Shown here: positions 762 to 48,094 of the stretch, piece after piece
Layout of the letters: each line of letters opens with the position of its first letter
Numbering within the stretch: the first letter of the stretch is position 1
Source: Piromyces finnis finn
Lineage: Eukaryota > Fungi > Neocallimastigomycota
DNA: 64,000 bases
NCBI GenBank assembly: GCA_002104945.1
Contig: MCFH01000020.1
Location: forward strand, 1-64,000
Direction of reading: 5' to 3'
Notes under the pieces: generated by a model
What the model saw: only the letters and a program-made list of their open reading frames with translations
Told to the model about the DNA's origin: nothing
Database searches by the model: none
Translations under genes and position numbers: made by a program

Positions 762-3068
762 ATGTTTGGAATAATATTAATTACTGCGTTAATAGCAGTT
801 TTTATATCAAATGCAATTGCTTTTGAAATGAAATTGAATACTTTATATTTAACAGCTCGTGTTGATGGAATGACAGCTATAGATACAGTAGGTGCAGATC
901 AAAATTCAGTTGTACCAATGATGATGGATAGTTATGGTTTGAATTACGATACAGTTTTATTACCAACTAGCTCTTTAACTTTAGAAAAAGATAATGTTGC
1001 TTTATATAATACTATTGTTGTCGAAGGAGCTACTCTTCAACAATTAAATCAGGTTAAAGCACAAATTACAGCGTATCAAACTAAATATAAGATTAGAGTT
1101 GTATATTTAAATTGTGAGCCAGATCCTTTACAAGGTTTTAAACAAAATGGTTTTAATCCTATTCAAACTATTGCAATGAGAAATGTAAAGTTAACAGAAG
1201 AAGCACTTCAATTAGCACACCAATATCAAATGAAAGGAGATGATGTTAATTTCAGAGTAGAAACATGTATTCTTCGTGATATTACGGATGTCAATACTTG
1301 TATTCGATATCATCATTATGAAGTTGCACTTGAAAATCCATCCGATCCAAATATCAAACCACTTTTAAGTTTCTTAGATTTCGAATACAACCAAGAAATT
1401 GGAGCGTATGGAGGAGCACTTATTAATAACAATGGATTAGAAGAAATGCATTTTTGGATTTCATTTGTTGATTCTCATATTGCGTTTTTCGTTAGTCACA
1501 TATGGATTCCATGGGCCAACTATGGTATGATTGATGGCTATAGAAGACTCTTTTTCGAAATTCAAATTGATGATTACTTCACCGATAATTGCTTTAATAA
1601 GGCAGATTGTGAAGGTAAGAGAGAACCAGCAGGAGTTCCACATTACCGAACATCTGTTGAAGATATGAAGAATATTGCACAATGGCATAAAGATGTATCA
1701 AGCCGTTTACCAAAAGGATCCAACATTAAAATTGAATTAGCAATTAATGGTATTCATATTTTAACCGAAACACAACATAAAATCCAAGGGGTATTCCAAA
1801 ATTGGACAGTTCCAGAAACTGGGTATGATTACGTAAAGCCATTGGGTTTCCAAGGAACTAGTAGATGGCCAGAAGACATTGATGATGACTGGGATGATTC
1901 TTTATTACAACAATTAGATCCATTATATGCCTTCTTTAAGAAACCCGAAAATCAAGACAATTTCTATTGGCTTACTCACACTTTCACTCACTTGAAACTT
2001 GATGCAGCCTCCTACCATGATTCAGATATGGAAATGAGAGCCAATATCAAGATGAGTAAAGAGCCATATCTTGGTATGTATGATAGAGAATGTTACTCTA
2101 AGCATAGTATTGTCACACCCGAAATCAGTGGTCTTCACAATGGAGATAATTTAAAAGCATTTTCAGAAAATGGAGTTTATTATGCGGTTGGAGATACTTC
2201 ACGTACAGATCTTTCACCAGGTAATTTCTATTTCCCATTTATTTCTAATCAGACAACATCTAATTTTGATGGATTTGTTGTATTCCCACGTCAACCACCA
2301 CAAGTGTATTGGGATTGCTCTAGAATTGAAGAAAATATGGAAACATATAGATTAAGATATCCAGACCGAACATCCGTTACATGGGAAAAGCATTTAGATG
2401 AAGAAGCGGAACTTCATATTAAAAACTTTTTAAAATTAAGACATGATCCATATATGTTCCATGAAGGTAATTTAAGAAACGCAGATTTCCAAGAAGTTAC
2501 AATTGGAAAAGCCACAGGTAAATTTGGAATGATGCAACAATGGGTTGAAAGAATGGTTGTTGAAGTTGGAAAGTATTTAGATTGGCCAATGATTTCAGTT
2601 AAGATGGATGATCTTGCAGCATCGTATATTGATAGAATCAGTAGAGCAAGTTGTCAACCACAATATACCATGGTTATTGATGATGATTCAGGTATTATTA
2701 AGGAAGTTAAAGTTGAATCCCAAGCAGAAGTTAAGCTTAATATTGTTGGAGATTATAAAGCACAATGTCGTGCTCCATTATTTGTCATGAGAGATGTTGA
2801 ATTTAATGAGAAGCATGATATTCAAAATGTTGAAAAGATAGGAGATGAACCACCAACAGCATGGATAATTCTTGATAAGGCAGGAGAAAGTAAATCATTC
2901 AAATTTTCTAAAGAAATCAAGTATAATGATGAAAAGTTTGTAGGTAAATCCAGTGGAACATTTTTCTCAGGTTTTAAACTTTACTTAATAATTTTCGTTG
3001 GAATTGTTATTCTTTTACTTGCCGCTTACTTTATCATTAGCAAAAAACGCGGAAATAAATCTAACTAA
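762..3068 (+). CDS. agd3: Agd3-like (CE18) polysaccharide deacetylase, copy 1; signal peptide, C-terminal TM helix, short basic tail
   Basis: Intronless 768-aa ORF. Motifs EIQIDD, WLTHTFTH, EISGLHNGD, VGDTS, PRQP, DPYMFHEGNLRN match my recollection of the Agd3 DD / HTFTH / FH catalytic and metal-binding motifs. Hydrophobic N-terminus; TM LYLIIFVGIVILLLAAYFII followed by SKKRGNKSN. Confidence 0.82.
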   Translation: MFGIILITALIAVFISNAIAFEMKLNTLYLTARVDGMTAIDTVGADQNSVVPMMMDSYGLNYDTVLLPTSSLTLEKDNVALYNTIVVEGATLQQLNQVKAQITAYQTKYKIRVVYLNCEPDPLQGFKQNGFNPIQTIAMRNVKLTEEALQLAHQYQMKGDDVNFRVETCILRDITDVNTCIRYHHYEVALENPSDPNIKPLLSFLDFEYNQEIGAYGGALINNNGLEEMHFWISFVDSHIAFFVSHIWIPWANYGMIDGYRRLFFEIQIDDYFTDNCFNKADCEGKREPAGVPHYRTSVEDMKNIAQWHKDVSSRLPKGSNIKIELAINGIHILTETQHKIQGVFQNWTVPETGYDYVKPLGFQGTSRWPEDIDDDWDDSLLQQLDPLYAFFKKPENQDNFYWLTHTFTHLKLDAASYHDSDMEMRANIKMSKEPYLGMYDRECYSKHSIVTPEISGLHNGDNLKAFSENGVYYAVGDTSRTDLSPGNFYFPFISNQTTSNFDGFVVFPRQPPQVYWDCSRIEENMETYRLRYPDRTSVTWEKHLDEEAELHIKNFLKLRHDPYMFHEGNLRNADFQEVTIGKATGKFGMMQQWVERMVVEVGKYLDWPMISVKMDDLAASYIDRISRASCQPQYTMVIDDDSGIIKEVKVESQAEVKLNIVGDYKAQCRAPLFVMRDVEFNEKHDIQNVEKIGDEPPTAWIILDKAGESKSFKFSKEIKYNDEKFVGKSSGTFFSGFKLYLIIFVGIVILLLAAYFIISKKRGNKSN

Positions 3069-5175
3069 ATCGATTAAAGATTAATTACTTTATTAAAACA
3101 AACCTATATACATATACTTATTAATAACAAATAAAATAATATTATAGTAAATAACCTTTAAAATAGTGGTTAAAAAAAAAAAAAAAAACCACCAAAATTA
3201 TAATTCATTAATGTAGTGAATTTTTTTTATTATGTAATTTATATAATGTTATGTAATTCATAATATAACAATATATAATTTATATAACTAAAAATTTTAT
3301 AGTTGTATTTATAATATTATATCATAAAATATTATAAAATATAGTAATATAAAATTTAATTATTTATTATATTATTTAAATTATATCAATATCACAATAA
3401 GTAATTTCGAACTTGTATAAAATAATAATACAAAATTAAATTATTTCAATATACTTATGAATTATTTATTCTATAAAAATAAAACATAAAACGAAAAATA
3501 AATAAAATAATCATTAAATAGTTTTAACAATAGCATCATAATAAATTCAAAAGTTTTGTAAAAGCTTTTTTTTTGTTCTCCCTCTTTTCTTTTTAAAAAA
3601 AAAAATGAAGGATAAAAATAAAACTATAAAAACTAAATAATGGTAGTTAAAGAATAATTATATCTTTTTTAACATAATTCACAATACATAATACACATAA
3701 TAACATAATACATAATACATAATACATTAGATACACAATACAACTAGTAATAATTATAAAGTAAATAAAGAGGTACCTTTTTTTTTTTTTATTAATATTT
3801 AGTATTAATCCCCATAAAATTTAAATAATATATATTTGAAACTTTTCAAAAAGTAAAATAAATAAAATGTTTAAAAAAATTTTTTTTGTGATTCATAGAA
3901 TTTCTATTATCATCTGGTTTAATAAAATTGTGGAAATAATTAATTTATAGTATTGAACACAAAATATAAATTAAAACATGGCTTATAAAACAAAATCAAT
4001 ATTGTATTATAATAGATTATAAAAATACACCTTAATAATAAATAAATGAATGTGGCTATTGATATATTTCTATTACATATTTTTTAAAAAAAGAAAAACA
4101 AAAACAAAAATCAAAATTTCATTTATTAATTAAAGTTATTAATTATTGGAAAATTTTTTTTTATATGTCAAATATATATTATTAATATATAAAAAAGTTA
4201 TTGAAAACTTCTTTCGATATATATTATTATATTTGATTATTTGTGAAACCTTGATTTCTAGAAAGTGAAATTGATTTTTTTAAACATATAAAGCTTTTCT
4301 AATATATAATTATTCTTTTTATAGATTTATGATGAATATAGTATTAATTATTTATTAATAGCATACTCTTTAAATAATCATTTCTAAAATAATATAGTAT
4401 TATTATTTTTTATTAATAAAACATATAATTATTCTTTTTTTATTTCAAGGATTGATTTTTTTAATATAATATAGTTGTTTTAAATAATTTTTTTTTATTG
4501 TCATACTTTAATTTCCCTCAATTTCAATATATTGTAATATATGAATATTTAATTAATGCCATATATTATAGGAATGTTAATTTATTTTAAAAATTCTAAA
4601 AATGGATATATAAATTTTTATATATTGAAATTTAAGAGTTATTAAATCATGAATCCAAAAAACCCTATAAAAACCTTGATTATTCTCCAACTTTTTTTCA
4701 TATTTTAAAAAATTAATAAACATAACTCTATATTGAAATAAATAATATTCAGAAGCAAAAATAAAACAATAAATCTTCAAAAAGATTTAAAATGTTTTTA
4801 ATAATAAAATAGAAAAGCCTTATTATAACTTTGTAAATTCAATTATTAATATAATTAATATTTAGAATTATATTGATATTTTTTAATTTATAAATATAAA
4901 ACTTTCACAAAATTAAAAAATAAAAATAAAAAGTAATAAAAATAAAAAGTAATATATATATATATATAAAGGATATAATAAAATAGAAATTAAAATAATA
5001 AATAATTAAATAAATAAATAGATAAAATAGATAAATAAATAAATAATAATATTAACAATAAAAAAACATAACACAAACTAATATAATTAAAATAAGAGTA
5101 AAAACATTACCTTTGAAATAGATATAAAAAAGTATTATTATTAAACAAAGAGCAAAACAAACAAATAAACAAAAA

Positions 5176-7773
5176 ATGAATAGAATATTATTTATTACTG
5201 CGTTAATAGCAGTTTTTATATCAAATGCAATTGCTTTTGAAATGAAATTGAATACTTTATATTTAACAGCTCGTGTTGATGGAATGACAGCTATAGATAC
5301 AGTAGGTGCAGATCAAAATTCAGTTGTACCAATGATGATGGATAGTTATGGTTTGAATTACGATACAGTTTTATTACCAACTAGCTCTTTAACTTTAGAA
5401 AAAGATAATGTTGCTTTATATAATACTATTGTTGTCGAAGGAGCTACTCTTCAACAATTAAATCAGGTTAAAGCACAAATTACAGCGTATCAAACTAAAT
5501 ATAAGATTAGAGTTGTATATTTAAATTGTGAGCCAGATCCTTTACAAGGTTTTAAACAAAATGGTTTTAATCCTATTCAAACTATTGCAATGAGAAATGT
5601 AAAGTTAACAGAAGAAGCACTTCAATTAGCACACCAATATCAAATGAAAGGAGATGATGTTAATTTCAAAGTAGAAACATGTATTCTTCGTGATATTACG
5701 GATGTCAATACTTGTATTCGATATCATCATTATGAAGTTGCACTTGAAAATCCATCCGATCCAAATATCAAACCACTTTTAAGTTTCTTAGATTTCGAAT
5801 ATAACCAAGAAATTGGAGCGTATGGAGGAGCACTTATTAATAACAATGGATTAGAAGAAATGCATTTTTGGATTTCATTTGTTGATTCTCATATTGCGTT
5901 TTTCGTTAGTCACATATGGATTCCATGGGCCAACTATGGTATGATTGATGGCTATAGAAGACTCTTTTTCGAAATTCAAATTGATGATTACTTCACCGAT
6001 AATTGCTTTAATAAGGCAGATTGTGAAGGTAAGAGAGAACCAGCAGGAGTTCCACATTACCGAACATCTGTTGAAGATATGAAGAATATTGCACAATGGC
6101 ATAAAGATGTATCAAGCCGTTTACCAAAAGGATCCAACATTAAAATTGAATTAGCAATTAATGGTATTCATATTTTAACCGAAACACAACATAAAATCCA
6201 AGGGGTATTCCAAAATTGGACAGTTCCAGAAACTGGGTATGATTACGTAAAGCCATTGGGTTTCCAAGGAACTAGTAGATGGCCAGAAGACATTGATGAT
6301 GACTGGGATGATTCTTTATTACAACAATTAGATCCATTATATGCCTTCTTTAAGAAACCCGAAAATCAAGACAATTTCTATTGGCTTACTCACACTTTCA
6401 CTCACTTGAAACTTGATGCAGCCTCCTACCATGATTCAGATATGGAAATGAGAGCCAATATCAAGATGAGTAAAGAGCCATATCTTGGTATGTATGATAG
6501 AGAATGTTACTCTAAGCATAGTATTGTCACACCCGAAATCAGTGGTCTTCACAATGGAGATAATTTAAAAGCATTTTCAGAAAATGGAGTTTATTATGCG
6601 GTTGGAGATACTTCACGTACAGATCTTTCACCAGGTAATTTCTATTTCCCATTTATTTCTAATCAGACAACATCTAATTTTGATGGATTTGTTGTATTCC
6701 CACGTCAACCACCACAAGTGTATTGGGATTGCTCTAGAATTGAAGAAAATATGGAAACATATAGATTAAGATATCCAGACCGAGCATCCGTTACATGGGA
6801 AAAACATTTAGATGAAGAAGCGGAACTTCATATTAAAAACTTTTTAAAATTAAGACATGATCCATATATGTTCCATGAAGGTAATTTAAGAAACGCAGAT
6901 TTCCAAGAAGTTACAATTGGAAAAGCCACAGGTAAATTTGGAATGATGCAACAATGGGTTGAAAGAATGGTTGTTGAAGTTGGAAAGTATTTAGATTGGC
7001 CAATGATTTCAGTTAAGATGGATGATCTTGCAGCATCGTATATTGATAGAATCAGTAGAGCAAGTTGTCAACCACAATATACCATGGTTATTGATGATGA
7101 TTCAGGTATTATTAAGGAAGTTAAAGTTGAATCCCAAGCAGAAGTTAAGCTTAATATTGTTGGAGATTATAAAGCACAATGTCGTGCTCCATTATTTGTC
7201 ATGAGAAATGTTGAATTTAATGAGAAGCATGATATTCAAAATGTTGAAAAGATAGGAGATGAACCACCAACAGCATGGATAATTCTTGATAAGGCAGGAG
7301 AAAGTAAATCATTCAAATTTTCTAAAGAAATCAAGTATAATGATGAAAAATTTGTAGGTAAATCCAGTGGAACATTTTTCTCAGGTTTTAAACTTTACTT
7401 AATAATTTTCGTTGGAATTGTTATTCTTTTACTTGCTGCTTACTTTGTTTATGGTAAAATCACAGGAAATAAATCAGAAAGCAATTCCATGTATCATAAT
7501 AATCAAAACAATTTACAATATCAAAGTAATCCACAATTCCAAAGTAATTTTCAGTACAATCAAGGCCATCAATACCAACAACCACAAGAACCTTTAAAGA
7601 GTTACAATAATAACATGGCTGAAATGTATAATAGAAATAATATGATGGGCAATCGAAGTGGACCAACAAGTCCAATAAGTCCAACAAATGGTTATACTTA
7701 TGGACAAAGAAGCGATTTTCAAGATTTCAGAAAACAAAGAGGTGTTAGGAATTACACACAACTTAGAGACTAA
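5176..7773 (+). CDS. agd3: Agd3-like deacetylase, copy 2; TM helix plus ~100-aa Q/N/Y-rich cytoplasmic tail
   Basis: 865-aa ORF; core nearly identical to copy 1 with the same catalytic motifs; unique tail after the TM. Confidence 0.82.
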   Translation: MNRILFITALIAVFISNAIAFEMKLNTLYLTARVDGMTAIDTVGADQNSVVPMMMDSYGLNYDTVLLPTSSLTLEKDNVALYNTIVVEGATLQQLNQVKAQITAYQTKYKIRVVYLNCEPDPLQGFKQNGFNPIQTIAMRNVKLTEEALQLAHQYQMKGDDVNFKVETCILRDITDVNTCIRYHHYEVALENPSDPNIKPLLSFLDFEYNQEIGAYGGALINNNGLEEMHFWISFVDSHIAFFVSHIWIPWANYGMIDGYRRLFFEIQIDDYFTDNCFNKADCEGKREPAGVPHYRTSVEDMKNIAQWHKDVSSRLPKGSNIKIELAINGIHILTETQHKIQGVFQNWTVPETGYDYVKPLGFQGTSRWPEDIDDDWDDSLLQQLDPLYAFFKKPENQDNFYWLTHTFTHLKLDAASYHDSDMEMRANIKMSKEPYLGMYDRECYSKHSIVTPEISGLHNGDNLKAFSENGVYYAVGDTSRTDLSPGNFYFPFISNQTTSNFDGFVVFPRQPPQVYWDCSRIEENMETYRLRYPDRASVTWEKHLDEEAELHIKNFLKLRHDPYMFHEGNLRNADFQEVTIGKATGKFGMMQQWVERMVVEVGKYLDWPMISVKMDDLAASYIDRISRASCQPQYTMVIDDDSGIIKEVKVESQAEVKLNIVGDYKAQCRAPLFVMRNVEFNEKHDIQNVEKIGDEPPTAWIILDKAGESKSFKFSKEIKYNDEKFVGKSSGTFFSGFKLYLIIFVGIVILLLAAYFVYGKITGNKSESNSMYHNNQNNLQYQSNPQFQSNFQYNQGHQYQQPQEPLKSYNNNMAEMYNRNNMMGNRSGPTSPISPTNGYTYGQRSDFQDFRKQRGVRNYTQLRD

Positions 7774-8457
7774 AGTTAGATTCATCATTGAATAAATTTT
7801 TTTATGAATTTAAACAAAAAATTATTTTGAAAGAATATTCAACAATATAAAATGAATAAATTTTTTATGAAAATATATTCAAATTATAAGATTTTGTAAT
7901 ATATACTATAACCTATCCATCAATAATTATTATATAGTTTTAAAAAACTTTTAATATAATTTTAATTATATATATATATATATATACATACAAACAAATT
8001 AAATCATAAATAAAAGGAAAAATTAATAAATTTATTTGATATTAAATAATCTATAATTATTATTATATATTAAAAAAAAAAAAAATCTTACAGTATAATA
8101 ATACTGTTTTATTTTTTTTATTTTATTTTATTATTATAATTTTTTTTTAAAAGAAAAAAAAAAAGTGATAATCAATATAAGATTAATAAATTAGAAATCA
8201 ATACTTTTAAACCATCAAAAAAATAAAAGAAAAAAAAAAGAGAAAATATATATATTTTTTTCTATTTTTAAAATTTTATTAAGGTATAAATAAATAATGA
8301 ATTAATTTATTTCAAATTTTTATCAATAGATAAAAATATAAATAATAGATATTAATTAAAATATATACATGAATTTATAATTAATTAAAAGGTAACAAAC
8401 ATAGCAAAAAGAAAAGTAAAAAAAAAAAAAAAAAAAGAAGAAAAAAACAACTTAGAA

Positions 8458-9442
8458 TTATATATTATTTCTAGATGGATTACGGTTAGTTCTTCTTCTT
8501 GTTAATGTACGAGAAACACCAGTAGCAACACGAGTTGTAATATTTGTTACTTGAGCTCTTTTAACGAAAGCAAGAATACCAACACCTGCAGCAACAAGAC
8601 CTCCAAATACCACTGGAATAGTGGTATTACCATTTTCTATATTTTCTACAGCTTCACTAACATTATTTATATTGGCTTCATTATTAGTGTTAGAGTTTCC
8701 ATTGGTATTAACGTTATTATATTGAACATTGGAAGAATCGATACCTCTATCGTTTGAAGTTACAATATTAGTATCATCGGTATTAGCGTTACTAGAAGGA
8801 TTAGAAATAGATGGAGCTACATTTTCAGTAAGAATATTTCCTTCTGTAGAAGGCTTTTCTTCAGTTATTTCAGATGTTATTGGTGATGAAGATAATGTAG
8901 TTGCTTCAGATGTAGTTGTTTCAGAAGCAGTAGAAATAATTGTAGTTGTTTTTTCTTTTATTTCTTCAGTAGAAGTTAATGGTGATTTTCTTTGAGTGGT
9001 GGTTGTAGTAGTAGAAGTGTGTTTATTTTCTTCATTTATTTTATTATCTTTATCCTCCTCATCAGGTAATAAGTTTGAAATTACATTACTATTTTCAGAA
9101 ATAGTGGTTTTATCGGCTTGAGCTTCATTGTGAGCTAAATAATTACTACTACTTTTAGAAGATGAGATTGATTCTATGGTTGGTTTTTCTAATGTAGTAG
9201 TTGATGTAGTTCTTGATGATGTTGTTGTTGGTCTTTTAGTAGAAGTAATTGGTTCTCTAGTTGGTTGCTTTGTAGTAGTAGTAGTAGTTGTTGTTGTTGT
9301 AGTTGTTTTAATAACAGAGGTTGTTGGAATTTTTGTGGATGTAATGATAGGTCTAATAAGTTGTTTGGTAGTAGTAGTAGTAGTAGTTATTGGTTTTCTA
9401 GTAGTAGTAGTAGTTGTTGTGATTGTAGTTGGTTTTCTAGTT

Positions 9443-9477
<35 letters not shown>

Positions 9478-10439
9478 TGTTGTTGTTGTTGTAGTAGTTG
9501 TTGTTGTTGATTTTTTTGTGGTGGTAGTAGTGGTAGTGGTAGTTGTTGTTGTTGATCTTTTTGTAGTAGTTATTTTATCAGTGGTACTGGTCTTTTTACT
9601 AGAATTTATTTTTTCAAGGTATTCCCATGGCCACTCTTTTATTAAATCAATATCATTCATAGCCATATATTTTGCAACTTCGTTGTAACTTTCGATAATT
9701 TCTGATTTACTAATACCAGTTTCTTTTGAAAGGTTACTTAAATCATCACTATCATATTTGTTATTTACATATATTTTTCCTTCATCAGATATAACACTCC
9801 ATACAATTTCAAGAACACCTGTTGATTTTTTTGCTAATTTTTCAAAAAGAGTTTGACTTAAATCAATTTGAGTTTCACCACATGAACCACATTGATCAAT
9901 GACCTTACCCTTTACTATATATGAATTAATTAATGTTGTTTGTTAGAAATTAGAATAAAACCATTGATATAATATTGACATAATGGTATAATATTAATAT
10001 TTAAAATCATATGGTTATTTAATTACCAATTTTATAAGAACCAACAGCTTTTTCATAGTTAAGAGGCATAATGATGGCATATTTATCACAGTATTTGTAA
10101 TTTCCATTTTCTTTACTTTCGAAATAATTTGGATGCTATATAACAATAGAATTAATATTGTTGATTTGTTTATATATAGATTTGATTTTTTTTTTTTTTA
10201 ATATTTTAAATAGTCAATAATTTTTTTTTTCTAAAAAAAGTATATTATATAATTAAAAATATGATATTTACCATAGCTATAAAAAGATTATTCTTTGGTA
10301 TACCTCTTTCACATTTTGGATTTTCTTGTGTTTCACATTCATCTGGGCAACCATAAAATGTAGAACTGTAAGAATAATAGGTTGCATATGCACTATTGAA
10401 TAATAGGGCAATAAATAATATTAATGTATTTAATAACAT
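8458..10439 (-). CDS. Membrane-anchored RlpA-like double-psi beta-barrel (loosenin/expansin-like) protein with Thr/Ser-rich stalk; 3 exons (10439-10272, 10135-10027, 9914-8458)
   Basis: Splicing at GT-AG sites gives signal peptide + STFYGCPDEC...FIAMHPNYF...YCDKYAII...VKGKVIDQCGSCGETQIDLSQTLFEKLA...GVLEIVW, a typical DPBB signature (V-x-D-x-C-x2-C-x4-IDLS-x3-F-x2-LA). Then a poly-Thr stalk, TM IPVVFGGLVAAGVGILAFV and an Arg-rich tail. Confidence 0.75.
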
Positions 10440-11324
10440 TTTTAATTTTATTTTATTATTAATTATAGTTTTATTTTATTCTTTTTTGATATTATATATC
10501 TATTTATTTAACAATTTAATTATTTATATTTCCTTTTTTCTTCTATATTCTATTATTTTTATTATTTTATGTATTCTATTATTTATTATTGAGTTAAAAA
10601 TATTATAAAAAAAAAAGAAAATTTTTAGTTCTTTCATTTTGCTTTTATTTAAAATTTTGAATTACACAAGAACAAAAAAGAAATTACTATACATCATTAA
10701 TAAATTTTATTTATATTTAAATTTAATTTATTTAATTAGATATAATTTAAATCATTACTTTTGGTATTATTAAAGTTAATCAATATTTACAAATATTTTA
10801 AATATTAACAATTTTATTCTCTATTGTAATATAAAAAAAAAAGTTAAAAGTGTTATTAATATTTTTAAATAAGAATATATTGTGTAATAATATATATTAG
10901 TATAATCACTTTTTCTTTAATGCCACTCTTTTCTGAACCAAAATAATTAAAATTATTGAAATTATATTAATTATCGTTTCAACCCATCATATTTATTACA
11001 TTTTGTAATTAAACTTTTTAGTTTTATTTTAGATTTTTATAATGAAAACCAATAATGTTTTAACTTTTTATAAATTCAAAAATTTTTAGAGAATTAACAA
11101 TTTATTTTATTTTTTTATATCTATAATATATAGTAATATAAATAAACAGGTTTTAAAGTAATTTCTTTAATTTCTTTAATTTATTTTATTGCTATTTATA
11201 GTGTTTTTAATTATATAAATATTATTTATTAAAAATATTTATAACGATTAATATAAAGATTTGTTATTTGATAAGTAATAAAAAAAAAAGAAATATCTTT
11301 ATTCTAATAATGATAATGTGACCG

Positions 11325-11360
<36 letters not shown>

Positions 11361-12732
11361 GAGCCAACTAATTGAATACTATTGAATTAATAATAATAAT
11401 AAACATAATAATAATAAGCATAATAATCAGTACATTTTTATTCAATAATCTTTAATTTTTTTTATAAGAATTAACTTTTAATAGTTACAAAATATATATA
11501 GCCATCATAAAAATAAAAAAAAAAAAGTCATTTATAAAATTAAGAGATGAAATAAAACTTCATACAACATATATATGAATGAAATGAAAATATTGTTATA
11601 TTATATTGGTATAACAAACAATATATATACTTTATTCATTTTTTATTAAAAAGAAATATATTAATGAAATGAACTATTATTATTATTATTATTATTATTT
11701 TTGGTTAATAAAAAGTAGAATAATATCAGAAACTATTATAGTATTGAATATTACATAATAATAATAGCTAAAACTATATATATATTGAAAATTAATATAA
11801 ATTATTTGTGCAACCTTTATTTTTAAAATATAAATATTTTACAATCTTATAAAATTTGAATTTCTAAACTTTTTGTAAAAAAAAATTATCATATTTATTA
11901 TTAAATATTATTATGTAAAGTAGGTGATGTAAAAGTTTCATTTTATTATTATTTAGTTATTCTTCCTTATTATTTATTATCTAAATAAATATTTGAATAT
12001 TAAGTTTATAATAAAGAATAAATAAACAGTAAAAATGCTTTTTTTTTTTTTCAGAATTTTTTGACAGATTAGAAATAATTTTTAATATGGCTTGATAAAA
12101 CATTTCTTAATTATTAAACATAAAAAATAATTAACAATTACTTTTTTTTAAGGCTTTATGCTAAAATATTATTTAATTAATTCATATGATTTTAATTTAA
12201 ATATCCACAATTAAAAATAAGGGTTAATAATAAGGAAATTGTACAACTATAAATTAAAATGATAAATATAAAAAAAAAAAAATATTTATATTTAATATAA
12301 AAGTTTATTAATTATTTTTTTTTATATTGAAGTGTCAATTTTAGTTTTTTCATTTATATTGTTTTTTGAACAATATAAATAATATTAAAAAAAAAAAAAA
12401 GGAGAAAATCTATATTAATAAAGCCAAAACAAAAAAAAAAAAAATATTTCCTTTCATAAGATTTGCTTAGTAGATTTAATAATTGAAAAAAAGAAAAAGT
12501 TTTTTTTTTTCACATTTCAATTACATTCATTTCATAATTTTTATATATATATAATTAAATATATATATATATATATATAGACAATAGATTTGAAAAAAAA
12601 TTTCTTTAAAAGCAAATTTCATTTTTTTTTTTTTTAAATTAAAAATATAATATATAAAAGATATTTTTTTCTTCATTTTTGTTAAAAAAAAAAAACAAAC
12701 AAAAAAAAAGCAAATAATATATATAAAGCAAA

Positions 12733-15240
12733 ATGTTCAAAATATCTTTGGTAATAACATTATTATCAATTTTTATATCAAATGCAATTGCATTTGAAAT
12801 GAAATTGAATACTTTATATTTAACAGCTCGTGTTGATGGAATGACAGCTATAGATACAGTAGGTGCAGATCAAAATTCAGTTGTACCAATGATGATGGAT
12901 AGTTATGGTTTGAATTACGATACAGTTTTATTACCAACTAGCTCTTTAACTTTAGAAAAGGATAATGTTGCTTTATATAATACTATTGTTGTCGAAGGAG
13001 CTACTCTTCAACAATTAAATCAGGTTAAAGCACAAATTACAGCTTATCAAACTAAATATAAGATTAGAGTTGTATATTTAAATTGTGAGCCAGATCCTTT
13101 ACAAGGTTTTAAACAAAATGGTTTTAATCCTATTCAAACTATTGCAATGAGAAATGTAAAGTTAACAGAAGAAGCACTTCAATTAGCACACCAATATCAA
13201 ATGAAAGGAGATGATGTTAATTTCAAAGTAGAAACATGTATTCTTCGTGATATTACGGATGTCAATACTTGTATTCGATATCATCATTATGAAGTTGCAC
13301 TTGAAAATCCATCCGATCCAAATATCAAACCACTTTTAAGTTTCTTAGATTTCGAATATAACCAAGAAATTGGAGCGTATGGAGGAGCACTTATTAATAA
13401 CAATGGATTAGAAGAAATGCATTTTTGGATTTCATTTGTTGATTCTCATATTGCGTTTTTCGTTAGTCACATATGGATTCCATGGGCCAACTATGGTATG
13501 ATTGATGGCTATAGAAGACTCTTTTTCGAAATTCAAATTGATGATTACTTCACCGATAATTGCTTTAATAAGGCAGATTGTGAAGGTAAGAGAGAACCAG
13601 CAGGAGTTCCACATTACCGAACATCTGTTGAAGATATGAAGAATATTGCACAATGGCATAAAGATGTATCAAGCCGTTTACCAAAAGGATCCAACATTAA
13701 AATTGAATTAGCAATTAATGGTATTCATATTTTAACCGAAACACAACATAAAATCCAAGGGGTATTCCAAAATTGGACAGTTCCAGAAACTGGGTATGAT
13801 TACGTAAAGCCATTGGGTTTCCAAGGAACTAGTAGATGGCCAGAAGACATTGATGATGACTGGGATGATTCTTTATTACAACAATTAGATCCATTATATG
13901 CCTTCTTTAAGAAACCCGAAAATCAAGACAATTTCTATTGGCTTACTCACACTTTCACTCACTTGAAACTTGATGCAGCCTCCTACCATGATTCAGATAT
14001 GGAAATGAGAGCCAATATCAAGATGAGTAAAGAGCCATATCTTGGTATGTATGATAGAGAATGTTACTCTAAGCATAGTATTGTCACACCCGAAATCAGT
14101 GGTCTTCACAATGGAGATAATTTAAAAGCATTTTCAGAAAATGGAGTTTATTATGCGGTTGGAGATACTTCACGTACAGATCTTTCACCAGGTAATTTCT
14201 ATTTCCCATTTATTTCTAATCAGACAACATCTAATTTTGATGGATTTGTTGTATTCCCACGTCAACCACCACAAGTGTATTGGGATTGCTCTAGAATTGA
14301 AGAAAATATGGAAACATATAGATTAAGATATCCAGACCGAACATCCGTTACATGGGAAAAGCATTTAGATGAAGAAGCGGAACTTCATATTAAAAACTTT
14401 TTAAAATTAAGACATGATCCATATATGTTCCATGAAGGTAATTTAAGAAACGCAGATTTCCAAGAAGTTACAATTGGAAAAGCCACAGGTAAATTTGGAA
14501 TGATGCAACAATGGGTTGAAAGAATGGTTGTTGAAGTTGGAAAGTATTTAGATTGGCCAATGATTTCAGTTAAGATGGATGATCTTGCAGCATCGTATAT
14601 TGATAGAATCAGTAGAGCAAGTTGTCAACCACAATATACCATGGTTATTGATGATGATTCAGGTATTATTAAGGAAGTTAAAGTTGAATCCCAAGCAGAA
14701 GTTAAGCTTAATATTGTTGGAGATTATAAAGCACAATGTCGTGCTCCATTATTTGTCATGAGAAATGTTGAATTTAATGAGAAGCATGATATTCAAAATG
14801 TTGAAAAGATAGGAGATGAACCACCAACAGCATGGATAATTCTTGATAAGGCAGGAGAAAGTAAATCATTCAAATTTTCTAAAGAAATCAAGTATAATGA
14901 TGAAAAATTTGTAGGTAAATCCAGTGGAACATTTTTCTCAGGTTTTAAACTTTACTTAATAATTTTCGTTGGAATTGTTATTCTTTTACTTGCTGCTTAC
15001 TTTGTTTATGGTAAAATCACAGGAAATAAATCAGAAAGCAATTCCATGTATCATAATAATCAAAATAATTCTCAATATTACCAATCTAATATACCACAAC
15101 AATTCTCAAATGGCTATACCCAAACATTAAGAATTAATAATGATGTAAGAGCCACAGAAATTGGATTAAGACCAAATAATAATTATCAAGATAACCAAAA
15201 ACAAAAAGATTATAAAAATTATAAACAACTTATTAGTTAA
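12733..15240 (+). CDS. agd3: Agd3-like deacetylase, copy 3; TM helix plus ~70-aa Q/N-rich cytoplasmic tail
   Basis: 835-aa ORF; core nearly identical to copies 1 and 2; different signal peptide; tail diverges from copy 2 after MYHNNQN. Confidence 0.82.
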   Translation: MFKISLVITLLSIFISNAIAFEMKLNTLYLTARVDGMTAIDTVGADQNSVVPMMMDSYGLNYDTVLLPTSSLTLEKDNVALYNTIVVEGATLQQLNQVKAQITAYQTKYKIRVVYLNCEPDPLQGFKQNGFNPIQTIAMRNVKLTEEALQLAHQYQMKGDDVNFKVETCILRDITDVNTCIRYHHYEVALENPSDPNIKPLLSFLDFEYNQEIGAYGGALINNNGLEEMHFWISFVDSHIAFFVSHIWIPWANYGMIDGYRRLFFEIQIDDYFTDNCFNKADCEGKREPAGVPHYRTSVEDMKNIAQWHKDVSSRLPKGSNIKIELAINGIHILTETQHKIQGVFQNWTVPETGYDYVKPLGFQGTSRWPEDIDDDWDDSLLQQLDPLYAFFKKPENQDNFYWLTHTFTHLKLDAASYHDSDMEMRANIKMSKEPYLGMYDRECYSKHSIVTPEISGLHNGDNLKAFSENGVYYAVGDTSRTDLSPGNFYFPFISNQTTSNFDGFVVFPRQPPQVYWDCSRIEENMETYRLRYPDRTSVTWEKHLDEEAELHIKNFLKLRHDPYMFHEGNLRNADFQEVTIGKATGKFGMMQQWVERMVVEVGKYLDWPMISVKMDDLAASYIDRISRASCQPQYTMVIDDDSGIIKEVKVESQAEVKLNIVGDYKAQCRAPLFVMRNVEFNEKHDIQNVEKIGDEPPTAWIILDKAGESKSFKFSKEIKYNDEKFVGKSSGTFFSGFKLYLIIFVGIVILLLAAYFVYGKITGNKSESNSMYHNNQNNSQYYQSNIPQQFSNGYTQTLRINNDVRATEIGLRPNNNYQDNQKQKDYKNYKQLIS

Positions 15241-17046: not shown

Positions 17047-19182
17047 ATGATTAAAAAAATAATAAATGTTGCTACTCTATTTGTAGCACTGATTTCAAGT
17101 GTTTTTGCATTTGAAATGAATATGAATACTTTATATTTAACTGAAAATAGACTTAATTCAATGGTAAGTTCAATGCTCGATAGTTATGGTATGAACTATG
17201 ATATTGTTCAATTACCAGCCAAATCTTTAGTTTTAGAAAAAGACAATGTAGCTTTATATAATTCTATTGTTATTGAAAATGCCAAACAAGAAACTTTATC
17301 TGGAATTAAAGCTCAAATTGAAGAATATTCAAAAAAATACAAAATTAGAATTGCTTACCTTAACAGTGAACCAGATCAAAGTGTTGCGGCAAACAGTCAA
17401 CAATCCATTTTCATGAGAAATGTAGTTTTAACCGATCAAGGTTATGAATTAGCCAGTAAATACCAAATGAATGGTAAAGATGTTCAATTCACTGTTGGAA
17501 CTTGTATTCTTGATACTAACTTTCAATGTATTCAATATACTCACTACGAAGTTGATCCAATTATTAAGGATTCTATAAAACCTCTCTTAAAATATACTGA
17601 TATAGAAGCTTATGCTGGTGCTCTTGTTAATAGTAATGGTATAGAATCAATTCATTTCTGGATACCATTTATCGATTCTCATATTGCCTATTTTGCAAGT
17701 CATCTTTGGATTTCATATATTAATTATGGTTTGATTGATGGTTATAGAAGACTATTCTTTGAAATTCAAGTTGATGATTATTTCACAGATAATTGTTTCA
17801 ACAGTTCTGATTGTTCAGCCACTCCAGATGCACCACACTATAGAACTTCTGTTGAAGATATGGAAAATATTGCCAAATGGCAAAAGGATATTTCCTCACG
17901 TATGCCAAAAGGTTCAGATTTTAAAGTTGAATTAGCTATTAATGGTATTCACATTTTAACAAAAGCTCAACATAAACAATATGAAATTAGAAACTGGACA
18001 GATTACCTTTTCCCATATGAATACAAGAAGCCATTAAATGAACATGGTAGTAGCAGATGGCCAGAAAAATTTGATGATGATTGGGATGATAAAATTTTAC
18101 AAGATGATAAACTTTATAAACATTTTAAGAATCACGACAATCAAGATAATTTCTTCTGGTTAACTCATACATTCAGTCACCAAAAACTTGATTATGCATC
18201 CTATCGTGATACTGATTTAGAATCAAAAGAAAATATTAAAATGAGTAAAGAACCATATCTTGGCATGTATGATAGAGATTGTTACTCTAAACATAGTATT
18301 GTTACACCAGAAATCAGTGGACTTCATAATGGTGATGCATTAAAAGCTTTAACTGATAATGAAGTTTATTATGCTGTAGGTGATACTTCTCGTGTTGACG
18401 TTTCTCCAGAAAACTTTTATCTTCCATTTATTACTAATATGACTACTTCCAACTTTGATGGTTTTGTTGTAATTCCACGTCAACCACCACAAGTTTACTG
18501 GGATTGTTCAACAATCGAAGAAAATATGGAAGTTTATAAAATGAGATACCCAGACAGAACTAATGTTACATGGGAACAACACTTGAACGAAGAAGCAGAT
18601 CTTCATGCCAAAAACTTTTTAAAATTAAGACATGACCCATATATGTTCCATGAAGGTAATTTAAGAAATAGCGATTTCAAAGAAGTTAGTATTGGTTCTG
18701 GTAAGGGTAAGTATGGTATGTTACAACAATGGGTTGAAAGAGTTACCGAAGAAATTCAAAAGTATATGAATTGGCCATTAGTTTCAATTAAAATGGATAA
18801 CCTTGCTCAAACCTATTTAACAAGAATAAGTAAAGAACAATGTAAGCCAAAATACACAATGGTAGTTGATGATTCCTCCTTTAAAATATCTGAAATTAAG
18901 GTAAAGGCTACTACTGGTGAATGTAAAGTTCCATTATTAGCTATTAAAAATACCGAATTTGATAAGTCTACAGTAGATTCTATTGAAAAACTTGGTATGG
19001 ACCCACAAACGGCTTGGATTAATGTCAATGACAAATCTGTAAAATCTGTTAAATTTACAAGCAGTGTTCAATGGAATGATGATTCCTACACTGCCAAAAG
19101 TGGTAGTATTATCGCATATTCTATCTCTAGCTTAAAAATTTTATTATTAGTTGGTATTGCCACTTTATTCATCATGCATTAA
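17047..19182 (+). CDS. agd3: Divergent Agd3-like deacetylase, copy 4; probable GPI-anchor signal
   Basis: 711-aa intronless ORF with EIQVDD, WLTHTFSH, EISGLHNGD, DPYMFHEGNLRN. Ends KSGS + spacer + hydrophobic LKILLLVGIATLFIMH with no cytoplasmic tail. Confidence 0.8.
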   Translation: MIKKIINVATLFVALISSVFAFEMNMNTLYLTENRLNSMVSSMLDSYGMNYDIVQLPAKSLVLEKDNVALYNSIVIENAKQETLSGIKAQIEEYSKKYKIRIAYLNSEPDQSVAANSQQSIFMRNVVLTDQGYELASKYQMNGKDVQFTVGTCILDTNFQCIQYTHYEVDPIIKDSIKPLLKYTDIEAYAGALVNSNGIESIHFWIPFIDSHIAYFASHLWISYINYGLIDGYRRLFFEIQVDDYFTDNCFNSSDCSATPDAPHYRTSVEDMENIAKWQKDISSRMPKGSDFKVELAINGIHILTKAQHKQYEIRNWTDYLFPYEYKKPLNEHGSSRWPEKFDDDWDDKILQDDKLYKHFKNHDNQDNFFWLTHTFSHQKLDYASYRDTDLESKENIKMSKEPYLGMYDRDCYSKHSIVTPEISGLHNGDALKALTDNEVYYAVGDTSRVDVSPENFYLPFITNMTTSNFDGFVVIPRQPPQVYWDCSTIEENMEVYKMRYPDRTNVTWEQHLNEEADLHAKNFLKLRHDPYMFHEGNLRNSDFKEVSIGSGKGKYGMLQQWVERVTEEIQKYMNWPLVSIKMDNLAQTYLTRISKEQCKPKYTMVVDDSSFKISEIKVKATTGECKVPLLAIKNTEFDKSTVDSIEKLGMDPQTAWINVNDKSVKSVKFTSSVQWNDDSYTAKSGSIIAYSISSLKILLLVGIATLFIMH

Positions 19183-39642: not shown

Positions 39643-42622
<2,980 letters not shown>

Positions 42623-44350
42623 AATAACCTATTTGATTATAATTTAAATTGATATCATTATTTTATTAAAAAAATTTTTAGTTAATAGAAAAATTTGTAA
42701 TGAAATTAAAATTATCAAAATTTTATAATTCAAAAAAGATTTATTCTTCAATAAAAATATTAAGATAAAAAAGTATAGATATATAATCCTCTTTGATATG
42801 TATTTATTTATTTGTTTGCTTTTTATATGATATAATTATATAGCATGTATTCATGCATACTAGGTATTGATATAATAATTATAACTAAAGTTAATAATAA
42901 AGTATTTTATTATAATTTAAACTTTATAACTTCACAAACTTAAAACATTAATTTGATATGGAATAATATAATTGTGAAAATAAATTTAATTAATAAATAA
43001 TTTTATTAATAAGGTTAACAAAGAGAAAAAGTTACATTGTAAATATTACAGTTATATAATAAGATGTAAGGTTATGTGAACATATAAAATAAAATAAATA
43101 AAAAATAACTATCTCTAAAACACGAAGATATTACGTTTACAACACTTTTAACACATGTTTATGTTTTTATAATGATATAAGTTTCTTTTATCTTGTAGTA
43201 ATTTAATATTAGTTTATTTATAATTTATTATATTAGGTGAAAAATATTTTATTACTATTAACTTCTCTCTTATTAATAATTTCACTTATAATATTTTCTT
43301 ATTAATTATTAAAGCTCTTCTCTTTCTAATTATTAATTATTTTTACATGAATATTTTTATATTATAAAATTCCTATAATATAATTGAATATCAATTATAT
43401 AATGTAATGTATTCATAATATATGAATAATAATTAAATAGATATAATATATTTTACATTTTATATGAAATATTACTATATAAGGAAAAGTAATGTAATAC
43501 AAATAAGTATTACAATAAAATTAATACTAATATATAATATTAATATATGAGAATATAATGAAATATGTACGTAAATTCTATAATTAATATATACATAATG
43601 TATTATAATATATATCAGTTATTATATTATTATTATGAAATATTATATATAGATTTTTAAATATGAAATTGAATATTTTAAATAATAAAAATTATTTTAA
43701 ATATGGCTAATATGTAGCTAGACATATTAATTTCATATCAATAAGTTAGTCACGTGTATCATGAATATATGATATGGAAAATAAAATTATGTGTCCATAA
43801 ATGTTCCCAATAGCAATATATATATAAATATATATAAATATATGAAATTCGAATAGAAAATAATATTTAAATATAGAAAAATATTTTAACAAATAAAAGT
43901 ATAAATAAAAAAAAATATTTTGAAATTCTTATAATTCAAACCTTTAAATATTTTAATAACTAAAAATTAAAATGTATATTTATTCAAAGAATTAATTATT
44001 TCATATGAAATCATTAAGGCAAACAATAAACTTCAAATTATAATTTTTAAAAACTAAAAATTAAAATTATATAATTTTTTAATTTTTTATTATTTAATAA
44101 GATAAAAGTTGTTATTAAATATTTAAATTATTTAAATATGCCATTACACACAAAAATAGAATATAAATATTCTACAATACCAACTATTATTATTATTATT
44201 TTTCCATTATAAAGGCTTAATAATATATTATTAAAATCATTTAATGCAATAATTTTTAATGATTTTTATGATATTTATAATAAATTTAATTGTATTTTAT
44301 ATTTATTTCTATTTAATATTATTTTAATATATTATTTACATTATTATATT

Positions 44351-47050
44351 TTAATTATTTACACAAGTGTTACTATTATAAGTATTGAAATTATTGAAAT
44401 CTTGATTCATAGTTGAAATGTAATTTGTTTCTATATTTTCTTCATAATTACTATTTATATTAATGGATTTAACATATCTAGATTTAGATTTCCATTCAGA
44501 ATCATCATTTTCAATAAATCCTTTATTGATTTTATTAATAAGTTCAACTCTGATATTTTTCTTTTTAATAAAAGCTAAAATTAATCTAAATCCGTATATA
44601 AGCATGTAATTAGAAATTGAAATAATTAAATATACACATCCACTAATGGAATAATATAAAATATAATTTTTAATTTTTATATAATTAAAACATATAATGA
44701 GAATATGACCAATGATATCAATATATACAACAGATATGAAAAATCTTAAATCATAATATGTTGATTCTATATTCCATTCAATGAAAATGAAGAGTAATAT
44801 GAGAAGAATTATAAATGCAATATAAGACCATTTTAATGTAACGAATACTTTATTTAATGTAGTTTTTGCTTTACATATTTCATAGTTTTTTCCATTATCA
44901 GCATAAACTTCTTCAACAGAGTATGGTTCAATAAGAAGTAACCCATTCCAAGCAATATCTACCAAAATAAATAATAAAAGGAAGAGATATTTACTTTTTT
45001 TTATCAATTTAGATATTATATTTTCAGTAGGGTATTTAACTATTAATTTATATAAAATTGGAATTAGAATGAGGGTAAAACCTAATGAATGAAAAAGTGA
45101 ATTCAAATAACAATTTGTATTTGTAATATTTCCAAAATTAGTGAATGGAATGCATAAAATTAATATGGTTCCAATAACAGATAATATCCAAAAGTCTGTT
45201 GAAAGAAAAGTGAAAAATGGATCGAAATTTTCTTTAAATAATGCTATTAATGAAAAAAACATTAATATAGCTATAGTTGATATGACAATAATGCTAATCA
45301 AGCCGATATAAGAATCCGAAGTATTTATACTAATTTGATATATTTTTGTTAAATCAATAATTTTTTGAGATATTTCTTGTGCTGTTTTATTACCATATAG
45401 AAATTCATATATATAATTTCTATAATTAGCTGAATAACTCTCTTCTCTTTTTAAAAGATATGTGGTATCATTTATTGGTTGCATATTTTTGAATAATTTA
45501 CAATCAGCATCTTTACATGTATCCTCATCATCATACAATGCTTTAATAGCAGTAATTAATTGTCGTTTTCTAAAGTATTCAGTTTGTATATCTTTTGATC
45601 CGATATATTTTAATGCAATAATTGCTGCATCTATTCTTTCCACATCAATTCTTTTATAAATACCTATATTAAATCCTGTTTCTACTGTAGTTGAAACACC
45701 TTCTATTAACCCTGGTATATTTGAAATACTGTATGGTATGTTACTAATATATGGATCATTTAAAATCCAGTATTTTATAAATATTGATTTTCCATTAAAA
45801 AGCTTTTGCAATGAATACATTTCTTCAGAACGAAATTCAGAATCTATAAATTATATTATTATTATTTTAAAAATTATATAACAATTATATACAATATACA
45901 ATTATTAATAAAAAATATTTTTTTTTATCATTCATAAACCAATATATATTTTAAATTTCTCACCAGATGAAATTTCACTTTTAATCCTTTTCATCATTTC
46001 TAATGCATCAATAAATGATTTACTTCCAACCTCCGGATAACCTTCTTGAACGGAATCTCTACAAGAAAAAATAAATTCATAAATTGACTGGGAACCTTGT
46101 TGGCAATCTATTTTTTTTTTAATGATTAGAAATAATAAATATTAATTTAGATTTTTATAATTTTAAAATATTATTTAAAAAAACTTTTATAAAAAAAAAA
46201 AAAAAAAAAAAAAATAATTTTTTAACCATTAAATAATCCATTATATGCTGTTAATTCAGTATTATTTTTCTTTCTTTCTTCGTTTATAATAAATTTACTT
46301 GTATCTATCATTTCATTCCATGTTTTTGGAACTCTTTTATTATACTTATTTAACAGTTCTGTATTTGAATAAAAAACTGTATAAAGCAAACTAATGGGCT
46401 AATTATCATTATATCATTATAAATATGTATTTATCATTTATTTGTATATAAATAAATGATATTGATAAAAAAATTATTTAGATCTAAGATCTAATTGATA
46501 TTATTTACTATTATATTATATATTATAATGTATATAATTACAATTCCAATTAATTTATTATCATATCTACATAATTCAGATATTGTTTTTTGGTCATACA
46601 TATCAATATAATCCTTTGGTAAATAATTACTTAAATCTAATAAATATGGACTATATTTCTGGAGATATGTATTTTCATAAAAATATATATCATATTTATT
46701 ATCGTACTTTTTTAAAAGTACTTCTATCATTTCCCCGTAATCATTAACTGAAGATGAGGTACCCCCAGAAGTTACAACATTTATCTCAATTGTAATATCT
46801 AATTTGTTTTCTATAGAATATTTATTAAATTTATTTATAATTGTTGAATAATATTCTGTGTTTTTATCAAAGAAAAATGCAAGGGCATTTAAGACTAATG
46901 CATTTCCTACATCTTAATATATTTATATTATTAGTTTTATTATAATATAATATACTATTCTTATATAATAACAACATAATAGCTATATTTTAATTTACTT
47001 TGATTTAAAATAGTTATAATAATAAAAAAGAAAATTATTAATCTATTCAT
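44351..47050 (-). CDS. Solute-binding-domain/7TM receptor, gene 2; multi-exon
   Basis: Signal exon MNRLIIFFFIIITILNQ (ATG at 47050); same exon organisation and motifs as gene 1 (KYDIYFYENTY, TPKTWNEM-type, FIEWNIESTYYDLR). Confidence 0.82.
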
Positions 47051-48094
47051 AAAAAAAAAATTTTTTATTTAACCAATTATTCAATTATTGAATAAAAAAA
47101 TATAATTTTTTTTTTTTTTTGATAAATATATAAAAAATATTTGGATTTTTTTTTTTTTTTTTTAATAAAACCTAATTCAAATTCAAAAATAATATTATAT
47201 TTTTTCTTTTTAAAAATAAAATGAAATTATATTTTTAATAAAACTTAAAATTATATAATAATCTTAATAATTTTATATAATAAAGTTTAATATGAAATAT
47301 ATTAATATCAAAGAGTCAAAGAAAACTTTAATGCTATAATCTTTTTTTTTTTTTTTTAGATAGGAAATAAGAAAAATAAATTTTTGTATTATTTTTTTAT
47401 GTATTAATTTGTAATTTGTAATAACAGCATATTTCTAAACTATTAACTATTATACAAAAAGTTATATCACTTAATCGTATTTTCTAATAATATACCTTAT
47501 TTGATTATTTAAACAAAATTATTGTATAAATTTAAGGATTTATTGTTATATAATAATTTTATAAATTATATTTAATAAATTGAAAGAATTTCTTTTTAGG
47601 TGAAGTTTTATTCTAATATCTTCAAATAATCTACATCTATTTTAATTTAACCATTTTTGAAGAATATTAATAAAAATATTATATGGAAAAAAAATATAAA
47701 ATTAAAATATTAAATGTATTAAAATAAATAAAGAAAAAAGACCAGAAAATAAAGAATGGTTTACATGATAAATGTATTATATTATAGAAAATATTCTATA
47801 TATAATATATTTATTTAAAAAAACATTCATTTATAATTAAAATCAATTAAATTAAATGTTTATCCTTAATAATATTTATTTCATATTTATCAATATTTTC
47901 ACTTCAAATATAAAGAACTTTTCATTTATGTTTAGCTCTAACCAAATAATCTTATTAATTACTTTTTATTGTAATCAACAATAAATACCTTTATTTTAGT
48001 AATTTTATATATTTTAGTTTACATATTAATAATTCAAAAATAACAACAATAATGATATAAAAATAAATGAAAATGATATATAATATAAATCATT

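Follow-up and report, generated by a model that had tools for sequence, protein, structure and literature searches.

Probable gene conversion among the coding blocks of an old tandem array of predicted Agd3-like deacetylase genes in the anaerobic fungus Piromyces finnis

A tandem array of four Agd3-like genes

The analyzed window comprises the first 64 kb (C113:1-64000) of the 820,574-bp contig C113 (MCFH01000020.1) in the genome assembly of the anaerobic gut fungus Piromyces finnis (56.46 Mb in 232 contigs). It starts with an array of four genes, named here c1, c2, c3, and c4, that encode predicted relatives of the fungal polysaccharide deacetylase Agd3 (Table 1). All four are uninterrupted (intronless) open reading frames (ORFs) located on the plus strand. 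The coding blocks of c1, c2, and c3 are almost identical, and the analysis described below points to their homogenization by gene conversion within an array that is older than the species.

Table 1. Coordinates of the array, its homogenized blocks, and the intervening features in the 64-kb window
Feature	Coordinates	Strand	Comment
Copy 1 (c1), predicted Agd3-like CE18 deacetylase gene	762-3068	+	768 aa; signal peptide, ectodomain (CBM87, CE18, and Agd3_C), C-terminal transmembrane (TM) helix, short tail (…IISKKRGNKSN); ORF, Pfam
Copy 2 (c2), predicted Agd3-like CE18 deacetylase gene	5176-7773	+	865 aa; ORF, Pfam
Copy 3 (c3), predicted Agd3-like CE18 deacetylase gene	12733-15240	+	835 aa; ORF, Pfam
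Copy 4 (c4), diverged paralog	17047-19182	+	711 aa, without cytoplasmic tail; not homogenized
Homogenized core (probable conversion tract)	799-3032 (c1) = 5213-7446 (c2) = 12770-15003 (c3)	+	
5' extension, c1 and c2 only	780-798 (c1) = 5194-5212 (c2)	+	c3 differs at 10 of 19 positions
3' extension, c2 and c3 only	7447-7508 (c2) = 15004-15065 (c3)	+	
Interleaved gene between c2 and c3	8458-9666	-	Thr-rich, mucin-like membrane protein; unrelated; synteny marker
Intergenic spacer c1-c2	3069-5175	.	13.5% GC; unalignable to other spacers

Domain architecture and enzyme family

All four copies match the Pfam families Agd3_CE (1e-88 to 1e-89; 1e-88 in c1) and CBM87_Agd3 (4e-9 to 8e-10; 8e-10 in c1) above the cut-off. 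The Agd3_C match is weak, reaching 17 bits in c1-c3 (below the 27.5 cut-off) and 22.8 bits in c4. The c2 protein is similar to the Aspergillus fumigatus Agd3 structure (PDB 6nwz) over ~590 residues (3e-60). The catalytic residues described for Agd3 are the base/metal triad D377/D378, H510, and H514, as well as R613 and M666/H668 (PMC7229062). In c1-c3, the catalytic motifs aligned to 6nwz are QIDD (268-271), HTFTH (406-410), FPRQ (508), and YMFH (564-567), where the equivalent of R613 is assigned from the alignment only. The assignment to the Agd3 family is unambiguous. Inspection of the sequences reveals a signal peptide at the N-terminus of the proteins and a hydrophobic helix in their C-terminal part. 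We predict that c1-c4 encode type-I membrane-anchored Agd3-like (CE18) polysaccharide de-N-acetylases. Both c2 and c3 carry long, N/Q-rich cytoplasmic tails that differ from each other; that of c2 ends in …RNYTQLRD, and that of c3 ends in …KDYKNYKQLIS.

The P. finnis genome has at least 20 Agd3-like loci. A broken Agd3-like copy on another contig (G000:C127:13825-15677, locus L006) carries several in-frame stops and is probably a pseudogene of the c1-c4 subfamily, its best piece being 74% identical to c2 at the amino acid level. The genes uge3, sph3, gtb3, and ega3 of the galactosaminogalactan (GAG) cluster are absent from the 64-kb window; a genome search with the Pfam family Spherulin4 (Sph3) was uninformative, as no signal came from the control genomes. 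GH114 (Ega3-like endo-galactosaminidase) accounts for at least 25 six-frame matches in the genome, ~9 of them in one tandem array (G000:C178:783000-815500). Together with the Agd3-like loci, these matches suggest that the fungus has a large toolkit for galactosamine/N-acetylgalactosamine (GalN/GalNAc) polymers. The literature search for Agd3 in Neocallimastigomycota returned nothing relevant.

In the protein search, the only hit with at least 77% identity is P0001, a 641-aa P. finnis model derived from the window itself (12733-14655). Its start resembles that of c3, and its last residues are …TMVIDD. Public annotation of these genes thus seems incomplete, with truncated or missing models.

Identity pattern and tract boundaries

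The copies were compared in register, with offsets from c1 of +4414 for c2 and +11971 for c3. The shared core of 2,234 nt contains exactly 10 variable sites. The pairwise differences amount to 7 for c1-c2, 8 for c1-c3, and 5 for c2-c3, which corresponds to 99.6-99.8% identity (99.7%). In c1 coordinates, five sites are private to c1 (1255, 1388, 2793, 2936, and 3023), three to c3 (821, 989, and 1073), and two to c2 (2370 and 2390, corresponding to 6784 and 6804); third codon positions hold seven of the ten. The original prediction, made from the sequence by eye, had noted the near-identity of three copies with ~7-8 differing positions. The near-identity stands and the count was too low; every coordinate given there (1255, 1388, 2793, 2936, 6784, 780/5194, 3032, and 7508/15065) is correct. 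All five sites private to c1 are transitions with G or C in c1 and A or T in c2 and c3; the pattern fits AT-biased mutation on the c2/c3 lineage that was then spread by conversion.

The ends of the identical block differ between pairs of copies. At the 5' end, c1 and c2 are already identical from 780/5194, and c3 joins after 798. At the 3' end, c1 diverges at 3033, and c2 and c3 remain identical up to 7508/15065. The loss of identity is abrupt: past 3033, c1 and c2 mismatch at 37 of 62 positions, and past 7508, c2 and c3 mismatch at 73 of 100. The 3' extension spans the last part of the TM helix together with ~20 residues at the start of the tail. Thus, the in-register comparison reproduces the earlier description of an identity that begins within the signal peptide and stops at or just after the TM helix. 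Farther on, the tails of c2 and c3, though homologous, have strongly diverged and differ by indels, right beside a core with five differences.

The flanks were described as unrelated in the original prediction, and alignment of the loci together with their flanks bears this out. Stringent blastn of flanks and spacers (13-15% GC) yielded only simple A/T matches of 15-35 nt and no alignable homology. Permissive blastn (+1/-1, word 7) produced ~60% "alignments" at every offset; these reflect AT composition and were discarded as noise. The GC content ranges from 13 to 33% across the window, the core being at the upper end (33%). The fourth copy is ~69% identical to c1-c3 at the nucleotide level (76-78% in the best blocks), and no further near-identical copy was found elsewhere in the assembly.

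Syntenic array in Piromyces sp. E2

The relatives retrieved by the protein search bear the names of P. finnis, Piromyces sp. E2, and Anaeromyces robustus, and the closest of them lie on the E2 scaffold KZ151095.1, with array genes PIROE2DRAFT_14877 and 14879. The order on this scaffold is E2_A, E2_B (P0007), a minus-strand gene, E2_C (P0008), and E2_D, mirroring the order c1, c2, interleaved gene, c3, and c4 in P. finnis. The minus-strand interleaved genes of the two species occupy the same position and have a motif in common (DLIKEWPWEYL) with 18 of 22 identities, although no Pfam match was found for the P. finnis gene. The tail types also agree by position. E2_A has a short tail (…FFIIRKVGGKSK) that matches the c1 tail, as do the tails of the search entries P0002, P0003, and P0006, and the E2_B tail is long like that of c2. 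E2_C enters an assembly gap, and E2_D encodes 710 aa. The first 18 nt of c2 and E2_B are identical at 17 positions, and the tails of these two genes have the motifs PQEP.KSY, MY.RN, and QD..K...NY.QL in common; c3 retains the terminal QDNQKQKDYKNYKQL block. The fourth copy, c4, is the ortholog of E2_D, as the two are 78.7% identical at the nucleotide level and each is ~69% identical to the other copies. Short- and long-tail forms also occur in sequences of the Joint Genome Institute that apparently come from other anaerobic fungi.

Both species have the genes in one order, the tail types at matching positions, and the interleaved gene; the array with its tail types therefore predates the split of P. 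finnis and E2. This agrees with the earlier claim that the near-identity of the copies does not stem from a recent tandem duplication. When the 240 nt upstream were compared between the species, little information was gained; only c2-E2_B is weakly above shuffles (z = 3), and promoter orthology cannot be established from these 240 nt. Even the true orthologs c4 and E2_D are unalignable there, and the flanks are therefore at least as diverged as DNA parted since speciation.

Two further observations concern the genes of this array. The reading frame of E2_A shifts ~105 codons in (L013 ~420-480), either by a sequencing error in the Velvet assembly or by recent pseudogenization. The long tails of c2, c3, E2_B, P0004, and P0005 end in a conserved NY.QL (YxxL-type) motif, found approximately at 7747-7764 in c2, 15217-15231 in c3, and ~11850-11870 on the E2 scaffold (L013). 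This motif may be a tyrosine-based sorting signal.

Species grouping, divergence, and mosaicism

The cores group by species and not by position. Nucleotide identity of the core is 99.7% among c1-c3, 89-92% among E2_A, E2_B, and E2_C, and 72-75% between the species; thus, as the comparison with E2 was expected to reveal under concerted evolution, the paralogs are closer to each other than to their positional counterparts. The core DNA tree gives 100/100 support to each species' trio and to the clade of c4 and E2_D. Positional orthology of the cores is rejected by the approximately unbiased (AU) test, with p = 3.5e-49 for c1+E2_A and p = 6.4e-44 for c2+E2_B. In a tree of 13 proteins that includes five further relatives, short and long tail types are interspersed.

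Synonymous divergence (dS) is 0.72-0.89 between orthologs and roughly 0.01 within the P. finnis core. The latest homogenization was therefore very recent, at about 1% of the between-species synonymous divergence. Purifying selection was rejected as the cause of the identity, because synonymous sites are identical as well at an ortholog dS of 0.72-0.89.

The claim that the two ends of the block disagree on relatedness was addressed by a Sawyer-type permutation of polymorphic sites, a test of the GENECONV kind. Significant fragments with differing ends were found: P <= 0.0005 for the c1-c2 fragment at the 5' end, for the c2-c3 fragment at the 3' end, and for E2_A-E2_C, and P = 0.014 for the other E2 pairs. 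The E2 array consists of 98-100% identical blocks that alternate between different pairs. The ten core variants of P. finnis form four runs (runs test P = 0.019) and are biased to the tract edges (P = 0.008), leaving an invariant central stretch of 982 nt (P = 0.03). Such an edge bias is expected if the edges are included in fewer conversion tracts.

Homogenization is absent from two internal controls, c4 and three tandem 7tm_3 genes. The latter are class-C G-protein-coupled receptor-like genes (Pfam 7tm_3) at 39643-49615 on the minus strand, with 62-84% identity over the repeat blocks found. In another genus, a tandem Agd3-like pair of A. robustus (MCFG01000368.1, locus L015, 10001-12106 and 18162-20321) is 83% identical overall and 93-97% identical in a central block with diverged ends. 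This pair may have undergone partial conversion; the pattern is suggestive and was not counted as evidence.

Probable gene conversion and alternative explanations

The array is old but its cores are young within each species, and we therefore describe the case as concerted evolution. The explanation that we favor, with a probability of roughly 85%, is that c1-c3 belong to an old tandem array in which ectopic gene conversion in P. finnis repeatedly overwrote the alignable coding block. Repeated conversion among older paralogs was also the original prediction, and the shared synteny, the species-grouped cores, the AU test, and the fragment permutation all speak for it.

Mechanistically, non-reciprocal homologous recombination, for example synthesis-dependent strand annealing, would transfer one paralog's coding block to the neighboring copies. 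At least three events would be needed: (i) one or more that homogenized all three copies over ~799-3032, (ii) a later one that joined c1 and c2 at the 5' end from 780, and (iii) a later one that joined c2 and c3 at the 3' end, up to 7508/15065. The tract ends would mark the limits of alignable homology, namely the fast-evolving signal peptide on one side and the end of the TM helix or the low-complexity tail on the other. A conversion intermediate would have to pair with its partner at both ends; because of this, promoters, tails, and AT-rich spacers would escape conversion and keep their ancient divergence. Selection would not be needed to set such boundaries.

The extreme identity over 2.2 kb raises the question of whether the true copies are fewer or more divergent, with reads mis-assigned among the repeats during assembly or polishing. 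The position of c1 at the very start of the contig and the lack of an independent P. finnis sequence in the protein search, where the sole match of at least 77% is the window's own model, would suit such an artifact. Falcon, FinisherSC, and Quiver were used to build the assembly from PacBio fragments >10 kb (PMC5622200), a length that surpasses the 2.3-kb repeat together with its spacers and extends into the unique flanks. Moreover, homogenizing mis-polishing would not yield ten private differences that cluster in space, nor boundaries that are sharp and specific to each copy, the assembly holds no other near-identical copy, and the sister-species E2 assembly, made with a different technology, also shows within-species similarity (89-92%). 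We consider an artifact very improbable.

Species-clustered cores are predicted equally by independent recent duplications in each lineage, in which one ancestral gene was amplified by birth and death, and rapid turnover of the spacers of 13-15% GC could in principle explain the divergence of the flanks. The duplicated unit, however, would have to be the coding core alone, inserted three times precisely between existing signal-peptide and tail sequences. Nor would independent amplification account for what the two species share, namely the order of the genes, the tail type found at each position, and the unrelated gene that separates copies 2 and 3, for the 5' end and tail motifs common to c2 and E2_B, or for the c2 and c3 tails that are strongly diverged with indels beside a core with five differences. 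This scenario, too, has very little probability.

A less remote, though still unlikely, alternative accepts conversion and assigns the boundaries and the few unconverted residues to selection, so that three promoters and tails deliver one enzyme (subfunctionalization). The tail types are indeed kept across species, and the long tails end in the conserved NY.QL (YxxL-like) motif. Further, of the three nonsynonymous variants in the core, those at 1255 (R/K165) and 2793 (D/N678) have G in c1 and E2_A and A in c2, c3, and E2_B; the corresponding sites are 5669/7207 in c2 and 13226/14764 in c3. They may mark residues that are specific to a paralog and spared by conversion, or the two-site agreement may be fortuitous: it is weak (rough binomial P 0.03-0.1), and both variants are G/A transitions. 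Homology-limited conversion, in addition, gives the same boundaries unaided. In the original prediction, conversion was said to hold the enzyme constant and to leave regulation and tails distinct. This describes the outcome at the locus correctly. Such a purpose is unproven, since the same pattern would arise from homology-limited conversion by itself. A still more elaborate possibility, which we regard as doubtful, goes beyond conversion as a passive by-product: a maintained design would couple one homogenized ectodomain to position-specific promoters and to sorting tails, either short or long with a YxxL-like motif, and R/K165 and D/N678 would be shielded from conversion in both species. Combined with the GH114 and Agd3-like expansions, such a design would point to a trafficking-regulated GalN/GalNAc exopolysaccharide system in anaerobic gut fungi.

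Several points weigh against repeated conversion as the explanation, or limit its detail. The scaffold KZ151095.1 was assembled with Velvet from short and Sanger reads, contains N gaps, and carries a frameshifted E2_A; the mosaic of E2 blocks could partly be an assembly chimera. As the E2_C tail lies in a gap, the orthology of c3 and E2_C is by position only. The orthology of the ends comes from short stretches, of which only c2-E2_B is convincing at the 5' end. In P. finnis, c1 starts 761 nt from the contig end, and Quiver consensus polishing may contribute to the extreme identity. Finally, polarizing the ten core variants with E2 and c4 is unreliable at dS ~0.85, and hence no donor was assigned.

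Implications

The conversion mechanism is textbook knowledge; what is new is the Agd3-like family in anaerobic fungi, a poorly studied and extremely AT-rich lineage, as a clean and well-bounded example of it. Here, an array older than the species mimics a duplication ~1% as old. Where carbohydrate-active enzyme families have expanded in anaerobic fungi, paralog trees can badly underestimate duplication ages. Gene counting in these genomes is affected too, as is the calling of orthologs. A candidate surface-polysaccharide-modifying system is seen in the membrane-anchored Agd3-like enzymes and their alternative cytoplasmic tails. The literature search for gene conversion or concerted evolution in Neocallimastigomycota or Piromyces returned nothing relevant.

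Other genes in the window

At 51221-55753 on the minus strand, an ORF of 1,510 aa contains a reverse-transcriptase domain (RVT_1, 3e-35) and is probably a retroelement. It adjoins a glycogen synthase gene at 57640-59763.

Comparison with known systems

With A. fumigatus Agd3, the founder of the CE18 and CBM87 families (6NWZ; PMC7229062), the P. finnis proteins have in common the architecture of CBM87, CE18, and C-terminal domains and the catalytic motifs. In contrast, the P. finnis genes are intronless and encode a C-terminal TM anchor with a cytoplasmic tail. They form a tandem array instead of being part of a five-gene GAG cluster, are among at least 20 Agd3-like loci in the genome, and have a predicted activity.

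The E2 array resembles that of P. finnis in order, orientation, tail types by position, and the interleaved gene, and it has undergone its own within-species homogenization. The difference is one of extent: homogenization in E2 is partial (89-92%, with alternating blocks of 98-100%), whereas in P. finnis it is uniform at 99.7%.

Interlocus conversion of coding blocks in tandem paralogs is known from the primate gamma-globin genes, the Drosophila hsp70 genes, and the bacterial tuf genes. The P. finnis array shares with these classical cases of concerted evolution the near-identity within a species, the divergence between species, the sudden end of identity where alignable homology stops, the pair-specific tract ends, and the excess of differences at the edges. 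It differs from them in the host, an anaerobic gut fungus of the Neocallimastigomycota, in the CE18 family concerned, and in the extreme AT-richness that makes the contrast between the core (33% GC) and the spacers (13-15% GC) unusually stark.

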